Positions 15,992 to 30,300 of a stretch of 64,000 nt of DNA are shown here, piece after piece; the stretch's first letter is position 1, and the number at the start of each line of letters is the position of its first letter. Under the pieces are notes generated by a model that was not told the DNA's origin, did not search any database, and saw nothing but the letters and a program-made list of their open reading frames with translations. This stretch comes from Anaeramoeba ignava BMAN. Taxonomy: Eukaryota; Protista; Anaeramoebae. Position numbers and translations under genes: made by a program. The stretch spans positions 361,535 through 425,534 of the forward strand of contig JAPDFW010000074.1 in the NCBI GenBank assembly GCA_028826165.1, in the 5' to 3' direction.

Positions 15992-18900
15992 ATGAGAAGA
16001 AAAAAAAGAATTTCAAAACAAAAAAAATTAAAAAATAATAATCAAAATCAACAAGATTTATCAATTTTATCTCCAGAATTATCAGCTCAACTTGGAATAA
16101 CAAATGATTATCAAACTAATGATTTATCAAATCAAATTATAATTAATAAAAAAAATGAAAAAGAAATTGAAAAACAAAATCAAAAAAAACTTCAAAAAAA
16201 AATTGAAAAAAATCAACCTTTAAAAAAGAAAAGAATAAGTAAAAGAAAAGAAAAAAAACTTTGGAAATTAAAAATGAAACAAAATAAATTCATTTTAAAA
16301 GATAAATTAATTAATCAAGTTGCTAAAGGAAATCTTAATGATGATAAATTAAAATTATTTAGATCTTCAAAAAATTTAGGTAAAAAAGAAACTTTAAAAG
16401 AAAAACTTAAAAGAGGTTTATTGAAAAGAAAAAAAAAATCAAAATCAAAATTAATGAATAACAAATCAAGAAATTGAACAAGAAAGAACAAGAGAAAATC
16501 AAATTGAAAATCAAATCAAATTGGAAAATCAAAATGAAAATGAAATTGAAAATGAAAATGAAAATAAAAATCAAAATCAAAATAAAAATCAAAATCAAAA
16601 TCAAAATCAAAATCAAAATCAAAATCAAAATCAAAATCAAAATTGAAAATAAAAAAAATCAAAATCAAAATAAAAAAAATCAAAATCAAAAATAAAAATG
16701 AAATTGAAAAATAAAAAAGAAAAAAAATTCATTTCAAATTATAGATGAAAATCAAAATAAAAATCAAAAATTAAAGGAAAATCAAATTGAAAATCAAAAT
16801 CAAAATGAAAATGAAAATGAAAATGAAATTGAAAATCAAAATCAAAATCAAAATCAAAATCAAAATCAAAATCAAAATCAAAATCAAAATCAAAATCAAA
16901 ATCAAAATCAAAATCAAATTGAAAATGAAAATGAAAATGAAAATGAAAATCAAAATCAAAATCAAAATAAAATAAATTGTAGATGAAAATAATCAAAATC
17001 AAAATAAAAATAAATTAAAGAAAAGTTCATTTCAAATTGTAAGATGAAAATCAAAAAATCAAAATCAAAATAAAAAAGAAAAATCCATTTCAAATTAAGA
17101 AAATAAAAAAAAATCAAAATCAAAATCAAATCAAAAGAAATCAAAAATCAAAATCAAAATCAAAATCAAAATCAAAATCAAAATCAAAATCAAAATCAAA
17201 ATCAAAATCAAAATCAAAATCAAAATCAAAATCAAAATCAAAATCAAAATAAAAATCAAAATCAAAATCAAAATCAAAATCAAAATCAAAATCAAAATCA
17301 AAATCAAAATCAAAATGAAATTGAAAATAAAAATAAATTAAAGAAAAATCCATTTCAAATTATAGATGAAAATCAAAATAAAAATCAAAATAAATTAAAG
17401 GAAAATCAAATTGAAAATGAAAAGAAAATTGAAATTGAAATTCAAAATAATAAGGAAAATAAAGCTTTCTTTGTTCTTGTAAATAGAAAAAAAGAAATTC
17501 AAAAACATCGTTTAGAACTTCCTATTATTAGCGAAGAATATAATATTATAGACTATATTAGAAATGGAAACTTATTAATAATTTGTGGTGAAACAGGTTC
17601 AGGAAAAAGTTTACCAAATAGTTCTATTGTTTACACTCCTTATGGTCCTCAAAAAAATGGAAATTTAAAAAAAGGAGATTTAGTTTCTACTCCATTTAAT
17701 CAAAATTTTTCTAAAATTATTCAAATTTATCCTCAAGGAAAATTACCTGTTTATAGAATATTTTTTGATAATAATGATTTTGTTGATTGTAGTCTTGATC
17801 ATCTTTGGCTTGTTGATGAATATAAACTAAATAATTCAAATCCTCAAAAAAAACTTTATAAAACAAAACAATTGCTAAAATATATTAATCAAAATTCTTC
17901 AAAATTCAAATTCTCAATTCAAAATCCAGATCCTATATTCTTTTTCCCTCAAAAAATAGATATTGATCCTTATCTTTTTGGATTATCAATTTCATTTAAC
18001 GATATTTCTTCATCAAATAATTATTATCTATTCATCTATTTATTAGCTAAAAGATTTAATGATATTAACCAATTTCAAAACTATCAATCTTTTTATAAAC
18101 ATCTTCTCCACAACAAAAAATCAATTCCCAAAAAATTCATTTTTAATTCAATTTCTATTCGTGAAGAAATTATTCATTCTTTTCTTGATTTAAATAGCAA
18201 AATTACAAAATCAAACAATTTAATTTATCAAACAAAATTCCAAAAAATTGCTCAAAATATTCAATTAATAATTCAATCTCTTGGAGGTTTATGCACTATA
18301 AATAACCTCAAAAATGGAGAATTTCAATGTGAAATTATCTATTCAAATCCATTTAAATATAGAAATTTAAACAAATTTAATTTAATAAATCAACAAAAAA
18401 ATGTTCATTTAAAAAGATTTATTACTAAAATTGAAAAAAATCGAGAAGAAGAATGTTCTTGTATTTTAATTCAAGATTCTGATCATCTTTATCTCACAAA
18501 CAATTTCATAATAACTCATAATACAACTCAAGTTCCTCAATTTTTATATGAATCTGGTTATGGATCAATTAAAAGTTGTAAGTAAATAAATAATTTTTTT
18601 TGTTCAATATTTAAAATATTTAAAATATTTAAATAATAAAGCAAATCCAGGTAAAATTGGAATAACAGAACCAAGAAGAGTAGCTGCAGTTAGTATGGCG
18701 AAAAGAGTTTCAGAAGAATTAAATTTTAAACTTGGAGAAGAAGTTGGATATCAAATTAGATATGATAAAAAAATTAATGATAAAACAGTTATTAAATTTA
18801 TGACAGACGGAATATTACTTAAAGAAATTGAAAGTGATTTTCTTTTACAAAAATATTCAGTAATTATTCTTGATGAAGCACATGAAAGAACATTGAATAC

Positions 18901-21315
18901 TGATATTTTAATTGGTTTATTATCAAGAATTGTTATGATTAGAGCAAATTTATATTTGGAATCAAGAAAAAAGAAATTGAATTTGGAAAAGGAAATTGAT
19001 GATGATTTAATGGATGTAAACAAGAAAATTGATATTGGAAATAAACCAACACTTTTAAAATTAATAATCATGTCAGCAACTTTAAGAGTTGAAGATTTTA
19101 CTTCAAATTCAAATTTATTTCCAATTCCTCCACCTGTTGTAAATGTTGAATCAAGAAGATTTCCTGTAACAATTCATTTCAACAAAAAAACACCTTTGAA
19201 TGATTATATAAATGAAGCATTTGATAAAGTTGTCAAAATTCATAAATTTTTACCTTTTGGTGGTATTTTAGTATTTTTAACTGGGAAAAGAGAAATTATT
19301 GGTTTATGTAAAATGCTTAAAAAGAAATTTCCAATGAGAAAATTAGATCAAGATCATGAATTAAAAATGGAAATTGAATTTAAAAATTATTTTTTTGATG
19401 ATGAAGAAGAATTTAATAATTATAATGAAAATGAAAATGAAAATGAAAATGATTATGAAAGTGAATACGAAAATCAATTAAAAAATTTAGATCAAAATCA
19501 AGACTTAATTATTCCAGATTTAAAATCACAACCTTTATATGTTTTACCTTTATATTCTGCATTACCAACAAAAGAACAAATGAAAATATTTGAAGAAAAA
19601 CCAGAAAATACAAGATTAGTTGTTGTTGCTACAAATATTGCAGAAACTTCATTAACAATACCAGGAATTAAATACATTGTTGATAGTGGAAAAGTTAAAG
19701 AAAAAACATTTGATCCAAATACAAACATTTCCAAATATTCAATAGTATGGATATCAAAAGCATCAGCAGAACAAAGAGCAGGAAGAGCAGGAAGAATAGG
19801 ACCTGGTCATTGTTATCGTCTTTATAGTTCATCAGTTTTCCAAAATTTTTTCCCTAATTTTTCTCAACCTGAAATCAAACGTTTACCAATTGAAGATATT
19901 GTACTTCAAATGAAAAATATGGGAATTAATAATATTATTCATTTCCCATTTCCAACTTCACCAGAAGAAAAATCTTTGAAAAATGCAATTCGTATTTTAT
20001 TAAATCTTGAAGCAATTGAAAAATCTACTTATAAAATTACAAAATTAGGAAGAATACTTTCCCAATTTCCAGTTCTTCCAAGATTTGCAAAAATGTAAAT
20101 ATTTTATAAAAAATCATTTCAATAAAAAAATAATAATTAATTTTTTATTTAATTTAGGATTGTATTGGCAAAACAATATAATTGTCTTCTTTATATTATA
20201 GCTATTGTAGCTGCACTTAGTGTTTCAGAAATTTTTATAGATCAAGAAATTTTAATTGATGATGAAAATTCAAAAAAATTAAAAAAGAAAAATTATCTCA
20301 ATGGAAAAATTCAAAAAGTGATATTTTAGGAATTTTAAAAGCAATTGGAGCTTGGTTATATTCAGGTTGTTCTGAAAAATTTTGTATAGAAAATTATCTT
20401 AGATATAAATCAATGGTTGAAATTTATAAATTAATGCAACAATTATATTCAATTTGTTTAGAAATTTTCTCTTTAGAAAATGAAAATGAAAATGAAAATT
20501 TATTATCCAAAAAATATGTTAAATTATATAATCCAATTACTTCAATTTGGGAAAAACAAAATACTAATTTTCAAAATTTAAAACCACCAACAAAAACTCA
20601 AGAAAATCAAATTTGTCAAATTATAACAGCAGGTTTTTGTGATCAAATTGCTAAAAAAATTGGAAAAAAACAAAGTAAAAATCAAAACTTTGTTTTAACT
20701 GAATATTTATCATGTGAATCAGAAAAAATTCTTTATTTACATCCTTCTTCTTCATTATTTGAAGAACAACCAGAATATGTTGTTTATCATGAAATTATTG
20801 AAAGTTCAAAACCTTTTATGAAAGGAATAACAAAAATCGAATCAAATTGGTTATCAAAATTATCACCAAATTTATGTGAATTTTCAAAACCTTTAGAACA
20901 ACCTTCACCAAAATATTCTTCAGAAAAAGATCAAATAACTTGTTTTGTAATTCCAAGTTTTGGAATTCATTCATGGAAACTTCCACTTCTTGAGATTGAA
21001 ATTCCTTCACTTTCTGAAAGAGTTAAATATTTTGCATTATTTTTTCTTGAAGGAAAAATTTTTCCTCAATTAAATCAAATCAAACAATATTTAATTGAAT
21101 CACCTTCTATTATTGTTAAATCCTCTTCTTTTCCTCAAAAGAAAATTTATAATTTACTTCATATTTTACTTGAAAATCAAATTTGGTCAAAAAATTCTCT
21201 TATTAAAAAATGGGAAAATAATTCTCAATTTTTATTTGAAGAAATATCACTTTGGTTTAGAAAAAATAATCAAAAAAAACTTTATAATATTTGGAAAATA
21301 ATTACAAAAAATTAA
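15992..21315 (+). CDS. DHX37: DEAH-box RNA helicase DHX37/Dhr1, interrupted by an intein; introns at 18578-18641 and 20095-20157
   Basis: [15 protein letters not shown]-[intein][14 protein letters not shown], [50 protein letters not shown]. The Q/N-rich region at 16.43-17.4 kb is frameshifted. Confidence 0.92.
17608..18522 (+). mobile_element. Intein (305 aa), class 3-like, with a degenerate LAGLIDADG homing endonuclease
   Basis: A 915-nt in-frame insertion splits GSGK|T. It starts [13 protein letters not shown], has block [10 protein letters not shown] and block [17 protein letters not shown], and ends FIITHN followed by extein Thr. Confidence 0.95.
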
Positions 21316-21399: not shown

Positions 21400-24300
21400 A
21401 TGGAAAATAAAATTAAAATTTTTAAATTTTTATTTCTTTGGCAAAAATTTTCAAATTCAAAAACTTTTAAAAATCAAATACAATTAAGAAATGAACTTGT
21501 TGACAATTTTATTCTTCTTTTTTCAAATACTCCAAAATATTTTATTAAACTTCAATTAATGGAAAGTTCAAATATTTTTTATACTTTATTTTCAAGTTTT
21601 ATTTTTCAAATTCAAAAATTACAAAATAAAAAAAGTTTTGATAAATTTACAATTTCAATTACAAATTTATTAATTAAGAAAGAAACAATAAAATTATTTA
21701 AAGTACTTAATATGCTTGATTGTCCCAATGATCAATCTATTCAAGGGATGATAACATTATTACTTTCCTTATTAAACACAATTCAGAAAACAGATATTTT
21801 TCAAGAATTAACAGAATATTTTCTTCAAAAAAAAACATTTTTCCTTCCAATTAGCTTTTATTTTTATCCAGAAACATTTCCTATTGAATATTCAAATAAT
21901 GATCTGAATAATATCTCAAAAGAATTTTGTGATGATAAACTTATAAATTCTAATGATTATTTAAACAAAATTCTTAGAAATGAAGATTTAAGTTCTTCTT
22001 TAAACAATTTTGATAATCCAGCCTTTTTAATATTAGAATTACTAAATAATATTGCTTATCAAACAAATAATTTAAATGAATTTATTGACAATCAAAATTT
22101 ATTGAAGTTATTTAATCTTTTGAATCCAAAATATCCATCAAATTTACTCAGATTTGTTCTAAGAATAATTACTCAAATTTTCAAACAAGCAATTTCATCA
22201 AATTCAAAATCATTTCTCAGTTCTCCTCCAAATATTGTTCCATTTCTTTTGCATTTAGCAAATACAGAAAATAATACAGATTTTAAATGGGTTGTTGAAA
22301 TATTCCAATTTTTATTCTTCATTTTTCGTTTATTTAGTCTTGAATCTTCTTTTGTTTTATTTCAAAGCTTTGAAAAGAATGATGGATATAAATTAATGGA
22401 GAATTATCTAATTCATCTCGCAGAAACAAAAAACAAAGAAGATGATTTCCAATCCAAATTTGAAGAATTTATTACAACTTTTTCTCAATTTTCTTTTATC
22501 AAAAAACCTCAAAATTTACAAATTAGAAAATCTTCACTTTATCAAATAGATTCTTTTGATATTAATTCTACAAATCAAAAAACCAATTTGGAATATGAAA
22601 AAGAAAATATGTTGGATGCAACTAAATCTAACAATAAAATTATGAGGAATAAAAAACCAATAATAACTCTAATGAATATTTTCAATTCCAAAGCATTTGA
22701 TTGGAAAGTTGAATCACAAACACTCATTTCGATAACCAAAATTCTAAAAGCTCATCTAATCAATTTCCATTTCATTAATACTACAAATATGATTCCCATA
22801 TTATTTTCCAAATTTGATTCATTAAAAGATGAAGATCAAGATAATTTACTATCTTTTTTTGAATACATTACTTCATATCATAAAATTACTATTGAAAATG
22901 GAATATCATCTTATACAAGTCTTTTATTAAGTTATGAACCAAAAACAATTTTGAAAGTTTCAAATCACATTACAAAATTACTACAAAATCAAGAATTTAA
23001 TGAAATGTTGACAGAATCAGGAATAATTCTTATATTTTTTGAAATTATTAAAAGATTGAAAATTATGCATGAAATTGAAGGAAAAAGCAAAGAAGATGAT
23101 CAAGGAAAGCATGTTTATAACGAAATACTTTATACAAAACCTTTCAGATTTAAATTGGCATATGATTCCTTATTAAATCTTTTGTTGAAATTACTTAAAA
23201 ATAGTGAAGAAAATCGGCAAATATTTTGGACACAAGGAGCCTTTTCAATTCTTTTTGATTTGATAATGATAACAGATTCACCATGGAAAATTTTGAAAAT
23301 TTTATTATCAATTTCTTTCATTTCTGGACTTGATGAAGTTAAGAAAATCCTTTCAAGATTGATAATGTGTTTACCACTTTTGGGAAGTGCTTCAACACTT
23401 GATATTGATATTTTGATGAGAAGAGTTGATATATTAACATGTATATTGATAATATTTTATAAAAGACCAGAACTCAAGAATAATTTCGATTCAGGATTTG
23501 TTTGGATTTTTTCAGTTATTCATGGAATTGGAAAATCTATTGAAAATGAAATGAACAATTTAAGAAATTCAAAAAGTCAAGAAAAACTTGAGAATTTACA
23601 AGATGTTGAATTTTATGCTTTTATATTCATTGATATATTAATTAGAACATTAACAATAGCAGTTAATGGAAACAAGAAAAACCAAAAACTTTTGGAAAAT
23701 GAATTTAAATTCAAAACATTTTGTGACTCTTTAGAATCAACAAAATTATTCTTCTCTCCTTATTCTGAATTATTAATTGAAACATTTCTGAATCTTTCTG
23801 TTGGAGGAGGAATAAAAAGAAGAGCTATACTTTCAGAAAACTCAAAGAAATTAATGAAAGAAAAGCACATTTCTCATTTTTATACATCAATAATATCTCA
23901 AAATGAAAATATACTTTTGGAAATAATTAAATCAGAAAATTATTTTGAAATGAAAAAGAATGATGATGATAATATTTTATCAGTTCTTGAATTAATTTTT
24001 CCTTCTTATGATTTAAGGAATTCTGAACATTCTTTTATTATTTTATTTCCTGAAATGATCAAATTACTTTTTTCTTTAATTTCCAAACCAATAGAATCTC
24101 ATCATATAAAAACAGAAATTGTTGATAATGTGATTGAAGATATTATTTATCTTTCAGAATCAAACCAAATTAATTGTGAAAAACTCACTTCAATTTCCTT
24201 TATTAATGATCTACTTAATCTTTATAAAAAAATACTTATTGATGAGAATAATCCTTTACAACCTAAAATTATTCGCTTAATTCAAGTACTTAGTTCCCAT

Positions 24301-27300
24301 AATATTCGAGTTAATGAAACAAAGCAATTAATGAGATTATTAATGAAAGAAAAATGCCCACTTAATATTCTTCAAAATTTGGTTTATCTTTGTGAACACG
24401 AACAATCAAAACCTCAAAAATATGTTTCTTTAAATTTGAATGAAACACAAAAAAAGGATGAAATTGAATTTGTTATTCCACCAACAATGAACAGAAGTTT
24501 TCAAGGATTTACAATTAATTTTTGGTTCAATGTTACAGATTCAGCACTTTTATCAACAAAAAAATCACAAAGTTATATTTTATTAGCATCTTTATTATCA
24601 TATGACAAAACTTCTATATTATTTCGTATTGAATTATCTCCTGAACAAAAAATTTGTGTTTCAACTCAGAAAAATTTACATATAAGTTTTGAAAAATTTT
24701 CATTTAGAGCTAATTTTTGGTTTAATATTTCAATTTGTTATTCTTTTAGCAAGAAAAGTAATCGAAAATTAATTTTATATGTTAATGGAATTGAAGCTGA
24801 TTCTTTGAATATTAAGATTAGAAAAAAATCACTTATAAATAATTTCAATTACATTATTTTTGGAGGAAAGGAATATACAAATATTCAAATTATATCTAAA
24901 TTAAAACAAACAGATCAAGAATATCTTAATTTATCAAAAAGGAAGAATTTGTGGTATTTGGCAAACTTTTTAGTGTTTTCTCAGCATTTAGATTCAACTC
25001 AAAATTTATTCTTATTTTTATTAGGATCAAATTATTCAAAATTTACTTCTAAAATTTCTATAGAATCATCAATTGATATTTTAACTCATCAACAATTACA
25101 AATTTTTTTAGAAAAAACTGAAGGGAAATTGGAAAAATTATCATCAATTTCAATTAATGATCATATTAGAAAACCTTTATTATTTGCATTTTATCCAAGG
25201 AAAATAGCAGCATTAATTCAAATAACTTATGATAAATTTCCTGAATATTTAGTTTTTGCTCCATTAAAACCATCCAATAAAAATTCCAATTTATGTAAAA
25301 GAATGAAAGTTACAAGAATAAAAGATGCTATTTTTTCCTTAGGAGGAGTTAATACAATACTTTATTATTTGACACAAACTTTAGTTAAAGATGATTCTTT
25401 TCAAAGATATTGTTTTTCTTTACTGAGATTAATTTTGGATGATACAAACTTTGAATTTAAATATAAATATAACCAAGAAATTTATTTAATAATTCAAAGA
25501 ATAATAAGAAATCGAAATTTTAAATTAACTTATATTATTCTTGAAGAATGTTTTGCAATGTTTGGAATATTTAAAAATCAAATTATTGTTAAAAACGAAA
25601 ATGATGAAGAAGATGAATTCCAAAAAAAATATAAGGAATTTTTTGGAGAAAGATTTCCAAATGATGATGGAAATGGGAATTATCTATTTAATGTTGGAAT
25701 TATCAGAAATTTTGATTCTTTTTTAAATTTATTTTTGGATTGGACAATTTGGAAAAGAGCCAAATTAAAAATTCAAATTCAATTACTTTTAAGTTTATAT
25801 TCAATAATAACATCAAAAGAAGATTTATTTGATCACAGAATACGAAATTTCCAAGAATTGAATATAATTGAAAAGTTGCTATTAATAATTTTACAAGAAA
25901 AATCAGATCTTGATTCAAATGTTAAATTTTTGATATTTAAAATTATTGAAAAGATTCCATTTCGTTCTTCAGATTTTGAATTGGTTATTGGATATATAAT
26001 TCTTTTAAATGTTGTTTATTCAGGTGTTAATCCGATATCATTTGAAATTGCAAATTATAAGGATTTAAAACTTATCAGTAATATAAACACAGAAATTGAT
26101 GTTTTATTTAGACATGAAGAAGATTTAAGTGAAATTGAAAAGTTTGCATTTCAAGTTCTTTTTTCCATTTCTGAAAAAAATAAACAAAAAATTGATTTAT
26201 TAGTTGGACAAGCACAAATTGAAACATTAGTATCTTATTTTCAATATGCTTCAAAAGAATCTAAACCTGCTCTTTTAAAGTTAATATGTAGTTTAATGGA
26301 TTCAAATACACTTTCTTCTCATTTACATTCAATTTCTGGATTTCAATTAATGGGGAAATATTTTCAAAATGTAGAAATGGATCAAGAAATTGTTGCAATA
26401 ATTACAAGTTTTTTAGAAAAGAATTCAGAAGCAATTTATTTAGTTTTTGGTTCAATACCATTTATTCAAGATTTACAACTTAAAAACATTTTAGTATCAA
26501 ATGTTCAACAAATTCTTATGAATAGACAACATCAAGAACAAAAAAAACAAAGTATTTCATTAATTGATTTTATTAAGTATTTTTTTGGAATTATTCCAAA
26601 TATAAATTCAAATCAAAATGAAAATCAAAATGAAAATCAAAATGAAAATCAAAATCAAAATCAAATTCAAGTTTCTTTAAATAATTTATATCAAGATAAT
26701 CTTGAAAAATTATATTTTACATTATTTTTTGGAATTTGTTCATGTGATAAATTAATTCAAATTGGAAATCCTGAAAAAATTTCAACAGTTCTCTTTTCAA
26801 TATCAAATGTGAAAAATTTAACATTTTCAAAAATGAAATCATTTCAACAAAAATTTATGATTGAAGTTTTTGAGTTATTTGAAGAATCTTTTAAATTAAA
26901 GAAAAATCAAGCTAGTTATCAAAAAACAATTCAAAATAATTTTATTAGTTATATAAGAATTGTAACACAATTTATTCTTTTTTGGTCACAAAATCCAGAT
27001 GAAATTTCACAACATCAAGATGCTATATTTATTCATTTGATTCTTGATTCATTATTTAATTATTTATCCAAAATTGATTTGAGAAGTAAAATACAAGAAT
27101 TTGGAAGTAAAGAAATGAGAGAATGTATTACAAAATCAGTTATGGATTTGATTTTTAATTTTCTTTCTGTAAATCAACCAAATCATTTACAAGTTTCAAT
27201 TTTGAATATTATACTTGATAAAATTGAAACTAGAGAAATGATGATTCAAAATAAGATTCTTTTACGCAATTCTTTGTTTTATCTTTGTAATTTGAAAGAA

Positions 27301-30300
27301 AAAAGCACAAATATCAAAATTAAACATTTAGTAGAACAAGTATTACAAGTTCTTGAAACACATCCATCATTTTCAATTCGAAAAATTCAAAAATTCTTAA
27401 AACAAAATGTGAAAATTAGAAATATTTTAAATGTTGAATATAATCAATTAAATAATAATTCTATTATTAAAGGTCAAAAAATGGAACAAGAAATGAAAAT
27501 GAATAATGAAAAATTTTCCAAAGAAATTCAAATAAATATCACAAAAATTGAACAAGAATATGAAAAAAGTAATTTATCATCAAAATCAATAAATTTAGAA
27601 AATGATTTAAGAAGGAAATTTAAGAACAGAATTGATAATAGGTTTAATCATTTCATAAATTTATTGGAAAAAAGAGCTTATATTGAAAAAAGAAGTGGAT
27701 TGAAATGGGATCAGATTATTAAAGATATGACTCATGAAAGAGGAGTTTGGTTTCAATCAACAAAATTAGTTTTATATTGTTCAATGTGTATTGAATCACC
27801 TGAAAGAAAGAGAATAAGATTGAAGAAAGTGTTTATTCCTGATGAACAAATTCGGGAAAATTTACCAAAATTTAATTCACCTGATATTTACAAAAGAAAA
27901 CAAAATATTGAAGAGAATAATAACAATAACAATAACAATAATATTGAAATTGAAAGTGAAAATGAAAATGAAAATGAAAATTTGGAACATTTTTATTCAG
28001 ATGAATCAATAAGAGCAAAATTGAAAATTAAAGTTCAACCTAAAAAAATGCTTAATTTAATAAATGATATTAACTTTGTTCAAAAATCACAAAAAAACAA
28101 ATTTATTCAAGTTTTAGTGAAAATTTCTTTTGTTAGTAAGGAAAATGGAAATGAATGGAAAGAAGAAAATTCAAATGAAGAAAATGATCAAAATAAAATT
28201 GCTATAAGAAATAAGAAGAATATGAAAAAAAATACAAAAGAACAAAGTTCAAAACCATATAAATCATTATTAAAATTAATTACAAAGGAAATATCAATAG
28301 CAAATACAAAATTTTCAAATGTTTATGTTCAAAAATTATTTGCACCATTTATTAATACATTAGGATGTATTTCATACAAAGAAAAGAATGTAATTTCAAA
28401 TGAATGCAATTTGATAACATTTTATTTAGTGATAAGATCGAAAATTATAATAACTGAGAATTGTATTCATTTGGTTTTATTGAAGTATACTGGTGATAGT
28501 AATTTATTTTCATTCAAATTATTTTCACAAACGATAAATGATTATTATAAAATCAAATACAATGAGATTAAATACATTTTGAAAAGAAGATATTTAGCAC
28601 AAGATTATGCATTTGAAATATTTTTTACAAATGGAGTAACATTATTATTCTCATTCAGTTCATTAGATGAAAGAGATCAAATTATAAAAGAAATTTTAAA
28701 TCATAAACTTGAAAATTTTATTGATTATGAAAATGAAACCACATTGAAAGCATTGAGTAAATTATGGAGAAATGGAGATATAACAAATTTTGCATATTTA
28801 ATGCATTTAAACACACTTTCAGGAAGATCATATCATGATATTGGACAATATCCAATTTTTCCATTTATTATTTCAGATTATCAATCCAAAAAAATTGATC
28901 CAAACAATATTAATCAATTCCGAGATATTTCCAAACCAATGGGAGCATTAGATTCCAAAAGAGCACAAAGATTCATTTCAAAATACAATGATCTTAAAGA
29001 ATCAGGATCAGATCCTTATCATTATGGAACACACTATTCAAATTCAAGTGGAGTTATTTTATATTTAATAAGACTTGAACCTTATTCATCTTTAATGATA
29101 AATTTACAATCAGGGAAATTTGATCTTCCTGATAGATTATTTGACAATATTGGTTCAATTTGGAGAATGTATTCTTCAAATGCAGAAAGAGGAATCAAAG
29201 AGTTAATTCCAGAATTTTTCTATTTACCTGAAATGTTTTTGAATATCAATGGATTTGATTTTGGAAAAAAAATTATTACAGCAACAAGAGTTAATAATGT
29301 TGTTTTACCAGAATGGAGTCATAATAATGCAAGATATTTTACAAGAAAACATATTGAATTATTTGAATCAAAATATGTTTCTTCAAATATTAATAATTGG
29401 ATTGATTTGGTTTTTGGATATAAACAAAAGGGTTCTCCTGCTATTGAATCAATTAATGTTTTCCATCCTTATACTTATTATGAAAATGTGAATTTGGATT
29501 CAATTAAAGATCCTGTTGAAAAAGAATGTATTATTAAAATGACCAAAAATTTTGGACAAATGCCAAAACAATTATTTAAAACAAAACATCAATTAAAAAA
29601 GAAAATAAAATTATCAACTCAATTCATTAATGAAAATGAAAATGAAAATGAAAATGAAAATGATTTAATTGAAATTCAAGATGGAAATTTAAGATTAAAC
29701 AGTTTTTTCCAAAAAATTATTCCAACCAAAATGAAAAAAATTGGAGAAAGGAATCTATAAAATATTATACATTGGGAATCGAATAGAAACATTTAAAAAG
29801 CATCAAACATTTATATTTTCTGATCAAAATATGAGTGTTTTATGGAAAACATGGGATCAAACATTAAATTTCACTTCATTTGATGGGAATCGAAACTATT
29901 CCAAAAACATACCATTTGATGAAGTTATTAAATGTTGTCATTGCACAAAAGATGGGAAATATTTAATATTAGGAGGAAGTAAATGTTTAATAACAATTTG
30001 GAAAATTTCAACTGAAAATGGGAAGTTAAAAAGATTGAAAATGAAGAAGACATTATATGGACACACTGATTCAATTTTATCAATTGATTCATCTTGTGAA
30101 CACAGAATAATTGTAACAGGTTCAGCAGATGGAACAGCAATTATTTGGGATTTAAATGATTTCACTTGTTGTTATTCTTTGAATAACAATAACAATTATA
30201 ATAATTCAAAAGTTAATATTGTTTGTATTGATTCGATTAATGGAGATATTTTGACTTTTAATTTAAGTTCTTCCAAAAAAATTCCAAATTCTCTTAATTT

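Follow-up and report, generated by a model that had tools for sequence, protein, structure and literature searches.

A candidate class 3-lineage intein with an N-terminal serine in the Walker A motif of Anaeramoeba ignava DHX37

The 64,000-nt stretch analyzed here (Anaeramoeba ignava BMAN, contig JAPDFW010000074.1, positions 361,535 to 425,534; hereafter referred to as the window) carries the gene for the DEAH helicase DHX37, whose Walker A motif is divided by an insertion at window positions 17608–18522 on the plus strand. We regard this insertion as a genuine, translated P-loop intein of the class 3 lineage, belonging to an Anaeramoeba-specific clade that has spread between the P-loops of unrelated ATPases; the probability of this reading is, in our estimate, about 0.85. 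Class 3-type inteins in eukaryotic P-loops have already been published for Anaeramoeba (Gallot-Lavallée et al., PNAS 2023, PMC10710043), and the DHX37 copy is not a first. What this locus adds is modest: one further host gene, if DHX37 is not already in the list of those authors, and two features of the clade, in that Ser at residue 1 is maintained across it through both serine codon families, and the endonuclease active site is lost in every one of its copies.

The insertion and its intein features

The inserted frame consists of 305 codons without a stop, and each of the remaining five frames of the interval contains 18–38 stops. Under the insert's own base composition (21% G+C), the probability of 305 stop-free codons is 1.5e-12, and none of 20,000 shuffles of the insert was free of stops. 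The translated product starts with SLPNSS and ends with FIITHN. It is located at CGETGSGK/TTQVPQ (the slash marks the insertion point, here and below), where it begins with Ser, ends with THN and is followed by the extein residue Thr+1. When Ser1 to Asn305 are excised exactly, the canonical DEAH Walker A sequence GETGSGKTTQ is restored, as is expected when an in-frame insertion is an intein. A 915-nt stop-free insertion in the DHX37 Walker A motif had been described in an earlier note made from the letters of the window alone, and the translation reproduced it exactly. The open frame containing the intein is 492 aa long.

The characteristic residues are distributed over the intein blocks as follows (all coordinates are those of the window, plus strand). 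Block A begins with Ser1 (codon AGT, 17608–17610). The block B core, S62-L-D-H65-L-W67 (17791–17808), supplies Ser B:7, His B:10 and Trp B:12, the latter two being His65 and Trp67 of the DHLW motif (17800–17808). Block F contains Cys283-Ser-Cys285 (18454–18462), in which Cys285, the second Cys of ECSC (18460–18462), occupies F:4, the branch-point position of class 3 inteins. Block G is Thr303-His304-Asn305 (18514–18522), continued by Thr+1, the Walker A Thr (18514–18525 including this codon). His B:10, the C-terminal His304-Asn305 and Thr+1 are those expected from the intein blocks A, B, F and G. The earlier note had named DHLW, the Cys of ECSC, and THN with the extein Thr; all of them are present, and their positions are backed by the alignments given below.

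Class 3 inteins are defined by the triplet of Trp B:12, Cys F:4 and Thr G:5 (the WCT triplet) together with a variable residue 1 (PMC2807308), and their chemistry has been described (PMC2807308, PMC5222942, PMC7664689). In the alignment to gp41-1_WCT and to 182 relatives, the triplet was found as W67, C285 and T303, so that the W-C-T signature noticed earlier does stand at the correct block positions, which are invariant columns of the family. The +1 residue is Thr, one of the two residues (Thr or Ser) expected of class 3 inteins. The numbering of His65 and Trp67 coincides with that in the class 3 inteins Msm DnaB-1, Mle DnaB and Bvi IcmO (PMC5222942).

When the 305 residues were compared with the Protein Data Bank (PDB) using phmmer, the gp41-1 intein was the best single-sequence match (E = 5e-9). 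The better-scoring gp41-1 entry is 6riz, the engineered gp41-1_WCT carrying C1A, F65W and D107C (PMC7664689), and its grafted Trp (F65W), its grafted Cys (D107C) and its native Thr are aligned with W67, C285 and T303, respectively. An exhaustive HMMER search with the intein gave 7,897 proteins at E ≤ 1e-3, 4,046 of them at E ≤ 1e-10. The inteins cut from the best 150 of the 7,897 matches, together with the copies from the own genome, provided the 182 instances. Their junctions are overwhelmingly G-K/A-Q-P-L-D-S ... T-H-N/(T or S), in P-loops, and residue −1 is Lys in 162 of the 182. His B:10, Trp B:12, Cys F:4 and the terminal Asn are found in all 182 instances, Thr G:5 in 181 and the block G His in 180; at +1, Thr occurs 131 times, Ser 44 times and Cys 7 times. 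The hosts of the relatives are PhoH, RecA, T7-type terminase and MoxR-like AAA proteins from metagenomes. The Pfam family LAGLIDADG_3 (PF14528) was detected in most of these relatives. The profile of the family matched gp41-1_WCT (4e-20), PI-SceI (6e-15) and the solved class 3 inteins MchDnaB1 (6rix; 2e-13) and Msm DnaBi1 (6bs8; 5e-13).

The structural prediction is in line with these results. The AlphaFold (AF2) model of the 305 residues reached a pLDDT of 90.4 and a pTM of 0.89, and Foldseek matched it to PI-SceI (TMq 0.73), to class 3 DnaB inteins (TMt 0.70–0.78), to the TliVMA, gp41-1, Prp8 and DnaE inteins, as well as to the autoprocessing domain of hedgehog; the HINT fold is thus found in the model. 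On the basis of sequence and model, the insert is predicted to be a HINT splicing domain (residues ~1–105 and 266–305) with an inserted LAGLIDADG-type endonuclease domain (~110–260). The proposal of the earlier note that the insert is an intein is accordingly supported by the homology searches, the family profile and the AF2/Foldseek comparison.

The same data bear on the idea that the segment is an intron spliced out of the RNA, the probability of which we consider negligible. Its boundaries are AGT...AAT, not GT...AG. Its 915 nt are 14 times the length of the neighboring 64-nt intron, which starts with GTAAGT at 18578, and they are stop-free and coding throughout, with protein-level homology over all 305 residues. 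Moreover, a transcriptome-derived A. ignava open reading frame (ORF; EukProt EP01156, P0006) retains a paralogous dynein intein with 99.8% identity to the genome. Based on the boundaries and the coding signal, the intron reading of 17608–18522 was rejected.

The Anaeramoeba clade and the origin of the DHX37 copy

A six-frame search of the A. ignava assembly (42.8 Mb, 147 contigs) with the 305 residues revealed at least nine further intact copies with 34–43% identity. All of them are situated exactly between the Walker A Lys and Thr, begin with Ser-Leu, and keep DH(L/I)W, C-x-C and THN/T. Their hosts are a second DEAH helicase (L006; GQTGSGK/TTQLTQ), which we take to resemble PRP16/DHX38, dynein AAA1 (L007/L008; GPAGTGK/TETV), a second dynein P-loop (L003–L005; GPPGSGK/TMTL), two kinesins (L012 and L016; GATGAGK/TYTM), a Brr2/ASCC3-like helicase (L015; GK/TNIAL) and RAD51C (L010). 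Paralogues were found to be 100% identical to the A. ignava NCBI entries annotated as 'intein-containing dynein heavy chain precursor' (KAJ5071176.1) and 'intein-containing DNA repair protein rad51 precursor' (KAJ5066843.1).

In a mixture-model IQ-TREE phylogeny (quick search, residue 1 excluded), nine distinct copies, including the KIF18A intein of A. flamelloides (P0041), formed one clade with an SH-aLRT of 99 inside the family with Ala at residue 1, and FastTree with 179 rows gave the same Anaeramoeba clade. The Ser1 clade is thus nested among Ala1 WCT inteins, as common descent predicts, in a tree that was confined to this family; the phylogeny against class 1 and class 3 inteins proposed in the earlier note was to this extent obtained. 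Class 3 inteins have been reported to be monophyletic (Tori et al. 2010, PMC2807308). The sister of the clade in IQ-TREE consists of a Cys1 terminase intein and an Ala1 AAA intein (support 88), and the outgroup differs between the trees: the two Gly1 sequences placed as sister by FastTree were not reproduced as such by IQ-TREE.

The earlier note had suggested lateral acquisition. The wider relatives are indeed P-loop inteins of prokaryotes and phages; that DHX37 itself received its class 3 intein by fresh transfer from a phage or bacterium is improbable. Such a transfer would be compatible with the prokaryotic or phage character of the wider family (the metagenomic PhoH, RecA, T7-like terminase and AAA hosts) and with the metagenomic nature of the nearest outgroups. 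However, the DHX37 copy lies within a clade made up of Anaeramoeba sequences alone, and its best matches are the paralogues of its own genome and the A. flamelloides kinesin intein (42–47% identity), as against at most 37% for prokaryotic sequences. It also carries the Ser1 specific to this clade and, like the rest of it, lacks the endonuclease Asp residues, and the G+C content at third codon positions (GC3) is 0.092 in the insert versus 0.088 in the host exon. Since the copy is inside an Anaeramoeba-only clade and its GC3 equals that of the host exon, intragenomic spread is likelier than fresh lateral transfer. The immediate source of the DHX37 copy was therefore, judging from these sequences, most likely another Anaeramoeba P-loop and not a phage; a phage or bacterial origin would apply to the ancestor of the clade.

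The DHX37 intein closely resembles the published cluster 1 of Anaeramoeba inteins, which 'appear to be Class 3 inteins', are all located in P-loop motifs of unrelated hosts including dyneins and a kinesin, and have an atypical N-terminal residue that is also seen in phages (PMC10710043). It shares with them the organism, the position in the P-loops of non-homologous ATPases, the class 3 signature, the phage relatives and the clustering with P-loop inteins. The earlier note had remarked that the allele may already be catalogued if its source is Anaeramoeba; the source is Anaeramoeba, and there is a good chance that this allele is indeed in the catalogue. Among the papers searched, none pairs 'intein' with 'DHX37'. 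The main text on cluster 1 mentions neither the split of the Ser1 codons nor the clade-wide loss of the endonuclease Asp (PMC10710043).

Several points weigh against the reading given at the outset. Residue 1 of class 3 inteins is expected to be non-nucleophilic, and here it is Ser. The engineered gp41-1_WCT graft does not splice (PMC7664689), so that the triplet, though required, is not enough to establish the mechanism. Within the clade, the IQ-TREE phylogeny resolves poorly which copies are closest to one another, and the evidence at the DHX37 locus is at the level of the DNA sequence and the predicted structure. Finally, the 305 residues searched as a single sequence had no family match in Pfam and NCBIfam even at E ≤ 10, a result attributable to an AT-biased sequence escaping the models; the search with Hint/intein models proposed in the earlier note thus failed in this form, while the family profile, phmmer and the structure answered positively.

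Further copies were noticed in the same genome. The dynein region with P-loop inteins occurs in two to three near-identical copies (L003, L004, L005 and L007, L008; contigs C35, C92 and C113) with 91–100% protein identity, which suggests either that a segment with extein and intein as one unit was duplicated recently or that haplotypes were left uncollapsed. Disrupted copies of this intein type are located on C68 (L013/L019; G000:C68:374472-375423) and C113 (L014/L022/L023; G000:C113:182675-183611): one adjoins a DEAH helicase fragment and has stops, and the other is of the dynein AAA1 type with its N-terminal part disrupted by stops or frameshifts. These may be decaying duplicates. In addition, an intein of 373 aa interrupts an SNF2-type helicase (/TIQTISLL) on the minus strand of L021:724-1842 (G000:C71, ~846.3–847.5 kb). 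Its first residue is Ala (AQPLDAM), as is standard for class 3, and it falls outside the Ser1 clade. Its first codon seems to be directly preceded by a 3′ splice site (..AAAAAG), in which case the intron and the intein would have a common boundary.

Residue 1 and the splicing mechanism

The earlier note had contrasted the Ser1 of this allele with its W-C-T signature and had raised a dual or reverted mechanism on that account. Ser1 is indeed present, but it is not peculiar to the allele. Among the 182 instances, residue 1 is Ala in 123, Ser in 20, Pro in 11, Glu in 7, Cys in 6, Gly in 4, Met in 4 and Leu in 3, the others being rarer types. Ser or Cys at residue 1 accompanies the triplet in 13 of the 169 non-Anaeramoeba relatives (~8%), scattered over the tree, and a Ser or Cys start is also found in 3 of the 37 WCT inteins of the founding paper (Tori et al. 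2010, PMC2807308). In the Anaeramoeba clade, Ser1 is found in all nine or ten members from two species. Two kinds of codon are used for it: AGT or AGC in five copies (DHX37, the second DEAH helicase, kinesins A and B, and the Brr2-like helicase), and TCA or TCT in three copies (the two dynein sites and RAD51C). Because AGY and TCN are two substitutions apart via Thr or Cys, or else stem from separate Gly (GGY) and Ala (GCN) origins, Ser was either kept or re-found, and Ser1 in this clade appears, on these codons, to have been kept by selection and not neutrally.

It was also found that B:7 is Ser in every member of the clade. This position is of interest because in class 1 inteins the Thr at B:7 spring-loads residue 1 (PMC6195587). 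Outside the clade, Ser or Thr at B:7 occurs in 10 of the 13 Ser1/Cys1 members versus 41 of the 156 others (Fisher p = 4e-4). When phylogeny was controlled for by an independent-pairs test, the association pointed in the same direction in an underpowered comparison (median p = 0.25), and the covariation of residue 1 and B:7 is to be taken as a hint only.

Two accounts of splicing can be weighed with these data. Initiation by Cys285 is, from the sequence, probable to a modest degree. Under this account, proper ATP binding by the precursor DHX37 would have to await excision of the intein. Cys285 (F:4), aided by His65, Trp67 and Thr303, would attack the Lys(−1)–Ser1 bond to form a branched thioester at block F, the N-extein would then be passed to Thr+1, and the cyclization of Asn305 and an O–N shift would restore GETGSGKTTQ. 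An essential ribosome-biogenesis helicase would, in this case, become ATP-competent only after splicing by a phage-type class 3 intein.

The other account is a class 1-type or dual mechanism, in which an N–O acyl shift at Ser1 acts alone or in parallel with Cys F:4, making the clade a reverted or hybrid form of class 3; it is possible, with distinctly smaller odds. It would explain why Ser1 is fixed in a clade of two species although its members are only ~35–45% identical, and the use of both AGY and TCN would then reflect selection for a hydroxyl at position 1; the Ser at B:7 throughout the clade and the association of the two positions outside it are also on its side. On the other hand, W, C and T do not vary within the clade, a sequence-level argument for continued use of the class 3 machinery, and the phylogenetically controlled test was not significant. 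Tori and Perler reportedly found in 2011 that natural Ser1/Cys1 WCT inteins still follow the class 3 route. The P1S and P1C substitutions of MP-Be DnaB, moreover, reduced splicing (PMC2807308).

A stronger form of this account, that Ser1 is catalytically used and that the clade consists of natural class 1/class 3 hybrids with the two nucleophiles Ser1 (oxyester) and Cys F:4 (thioester), is doubtful. If the hybrid form were true, the AGY/TCN split of Ser1 and the hydroxyl association between residue 1 and B:7 would be its footprints; two nucleophiles might sustain the splicing of essential P-loop proteins under oxidation of the block F Cys, or could alternatively make splicing redox-tunable in an anaerobe. 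Whichever account is correct, the members of the clade lend themselves to a natural test of the capacity of WCT inteins to use, or re-use, a nucleophile at the N-terminus.

Two further cysteines were noted in the neighborhood of the splicing residues. The C-x-C arrangement of block F places Cys283 two residues upstream of F:4 (within 18454–18462); this column is Cys in 79 of the 182 family members and in all Ser1-clade copies aligned there. Cys60 (17785–17787) is positioned shortly ahead of block B. For Msm DnaBi1, a regulatory disulfide between the catalytic Cys and another Cys has been described (PMC6195587), and by analogy a redox switch via Cys60, Cys283 and Cys285 is conceivable.

In comparison with the class 3 inteins of bacteria and phages (MP-Be DnaB, Msm DnaBi1 (6bs8), MchDnaB1 (6rix) and TerL1-a), the DHX37 intein agrees in the WCT triplet, His65/Trp67, Thr or Ser at +1, and the insertion between the Walker A Lys and Thr/Ser. 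It differs from them in residue 1, which is Ser instead of their Ala or Pro, and in its host, a eukaryotic nuclear gene with spliceosomal introns. Furthermore, the DnaB examples are mini-inteins, whereas the DHX37 intein has a LAGLIDADG domain with a decayed active site. It shares the THN C-terminus with gp41-1 (6qaz) and gp41-1_WCT (6riz), but gp41-1 belongs to class 1, is split in nature and begins with Cys1; its B:12 residue is Phe and its F:4 residue Asp.

The endonuclease domain and the host gene

The endonuclease part has two LAGLIDADG helices in an α-β-β-α-β-β-α fold, as judged from profile positions 115–334 against PI-SceI and from the Foldseek matches to PI-SceI and TliVMA. The consensus motifs of the family are P-Y-L-L-G-x-L-L-G-D-G and L-Q-G-L-M-D-T-D-G, and their catalytic Asp is present in 136 (first helix) and 147 (second helix) of the 182 members. 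In the DHX37 intein, the first helix (17965–18003) reads S-F-N in place of the consensus G-D-G and lacks the catalytic Asp, and in the second helix (18160–18204; motif SFLDLNS) Asn196 stands in place of the catalytic Asp. Acidic residues are absent from both positions in all Anaeramoeba Ser1 copies, the second-helix position being N, S, F, Y, I or K in the clade; the alignment is gappy in block C, which renders the first motif less certain, and clear in block E. The lowest pLDDT values of the AF2 model also occur in this domain, although its fold is still confidently predicted. By sequence, the nuclease is probably dead in all extant Anaeramoeba Ser1 copies. Such decay fits old, ameliorated insertions, and a dead endonuclease in every copy raises the question of how and when the spread from P-loop to P-loop occurred. 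PI-SceI, the yeast VMA1 intein, has the same HINT plus LAGLIDADG architecture, but it is a class 1 intein (Cys1) whose endonuclease is active, with both Asp residues and an extra DNA-recognition region.

The host gene was searched exon by exon, without a joined spliced model. The N-extein at the end of the interrupted exon (17464–17607) covers the helicase motif up to Walker A with Lys as residue −1, and its matches to DHX37/DHR1 fragments are short, with 50–57% identity. The C-extein remainder of the exon (18523–18577) ends in phase 1 and is followed by a spliceosomal intron of 64 nt (GTAAGT...AG; 18578–18641), whose boundaries were read from the sequence and whose predicted removal restores the DHX37 frame. 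The next exon (18642–20095, the 3′ limit being approximate) encodes the helicase core, namely the rest of RecA1, RecA2 and the start of HA2. Its 467 aa contain the Pfam domains Helicase_C and HA2_N and match yeast Dhr1 (7mqj, E = 5e-132) and mouse/human DHX37 (~1e-128; 6o16, E = 9.5e-129) in the PDB, as compared with only ~1e-79 for DHX8 and Prp43. The C-terminal exon (20413–21312) encodes the OB fold (OB_NTP_bind) and the DHX37_C domain (PF07717 and PF23362). The database relatives scoring best for the exons are named DHX37/DHR1, and the identification of the host as DHX37 in the earlier note is borne out by the Dhr1/DHX37 structures and the DHX37_C domain.

The genome search found no second DHX37 gene: the DHX37_C exon is unique, and the next DEAH paralogues show at most 48% identity over part of the core only. 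From these sequence comparisons, the host is the single-copy DHX37/Dhr1 gene of A. ignava. The exon-by-exon search of the protein database returned no A. ignava DHX37 record within the length range searched, which does not extend to a full-length record. The absence of the own protein from the 50%-identity representatives is explicable by clustering, the DHX37 exteins being ~50% identical to fungal ones.

These results also bear on whether the insertion is dead, with an intein that has lost the ability to splice and a gene that is either a pseudogene or the source of a non-functional protein. The decayed endonuclease active site and a near-copy of the locus with frameshifts, found where contig C103 begins, would be in accordance with this idea. 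It is nevertheless very unlikely, because the open frame retains every splicing residue, the exons downstream are undamaged and bear a strong likeness to DHX37, and the genome has no second DHX37 gene; Dhr1/DHX37 is essential in yeast, where it is required for small-subunit maturation.

The near-copy on C103 (L002; G000:C103:1-2729, minus strand, ~326–1866) covers the DHX37 N-extein and the intein with 94.4% identity over 1,585 columns, 31 mismatches and 39 gap openings, and its frame is broken more than 10 times. As indels are as numerous as substitutions, the near-copy looks more like an unpolished contig end or a haplotig than like an old pseudogene; alternatively, it may be a dead duplicate of very recent date.

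Two other features flank the helicase core in the window. Directly upstream of it, ~1 kb of (CAAAAT)n-like hexamer repeats and their variants (16400–17420) are partly in frame with the helicase, where they encode low-complexity sequence rich in Gln, Asn, Lys and Ile. Directly downstream of DHX37, an uninterrupted ORF of 2,786 aa occupies 21400–29760 on the plus strand.

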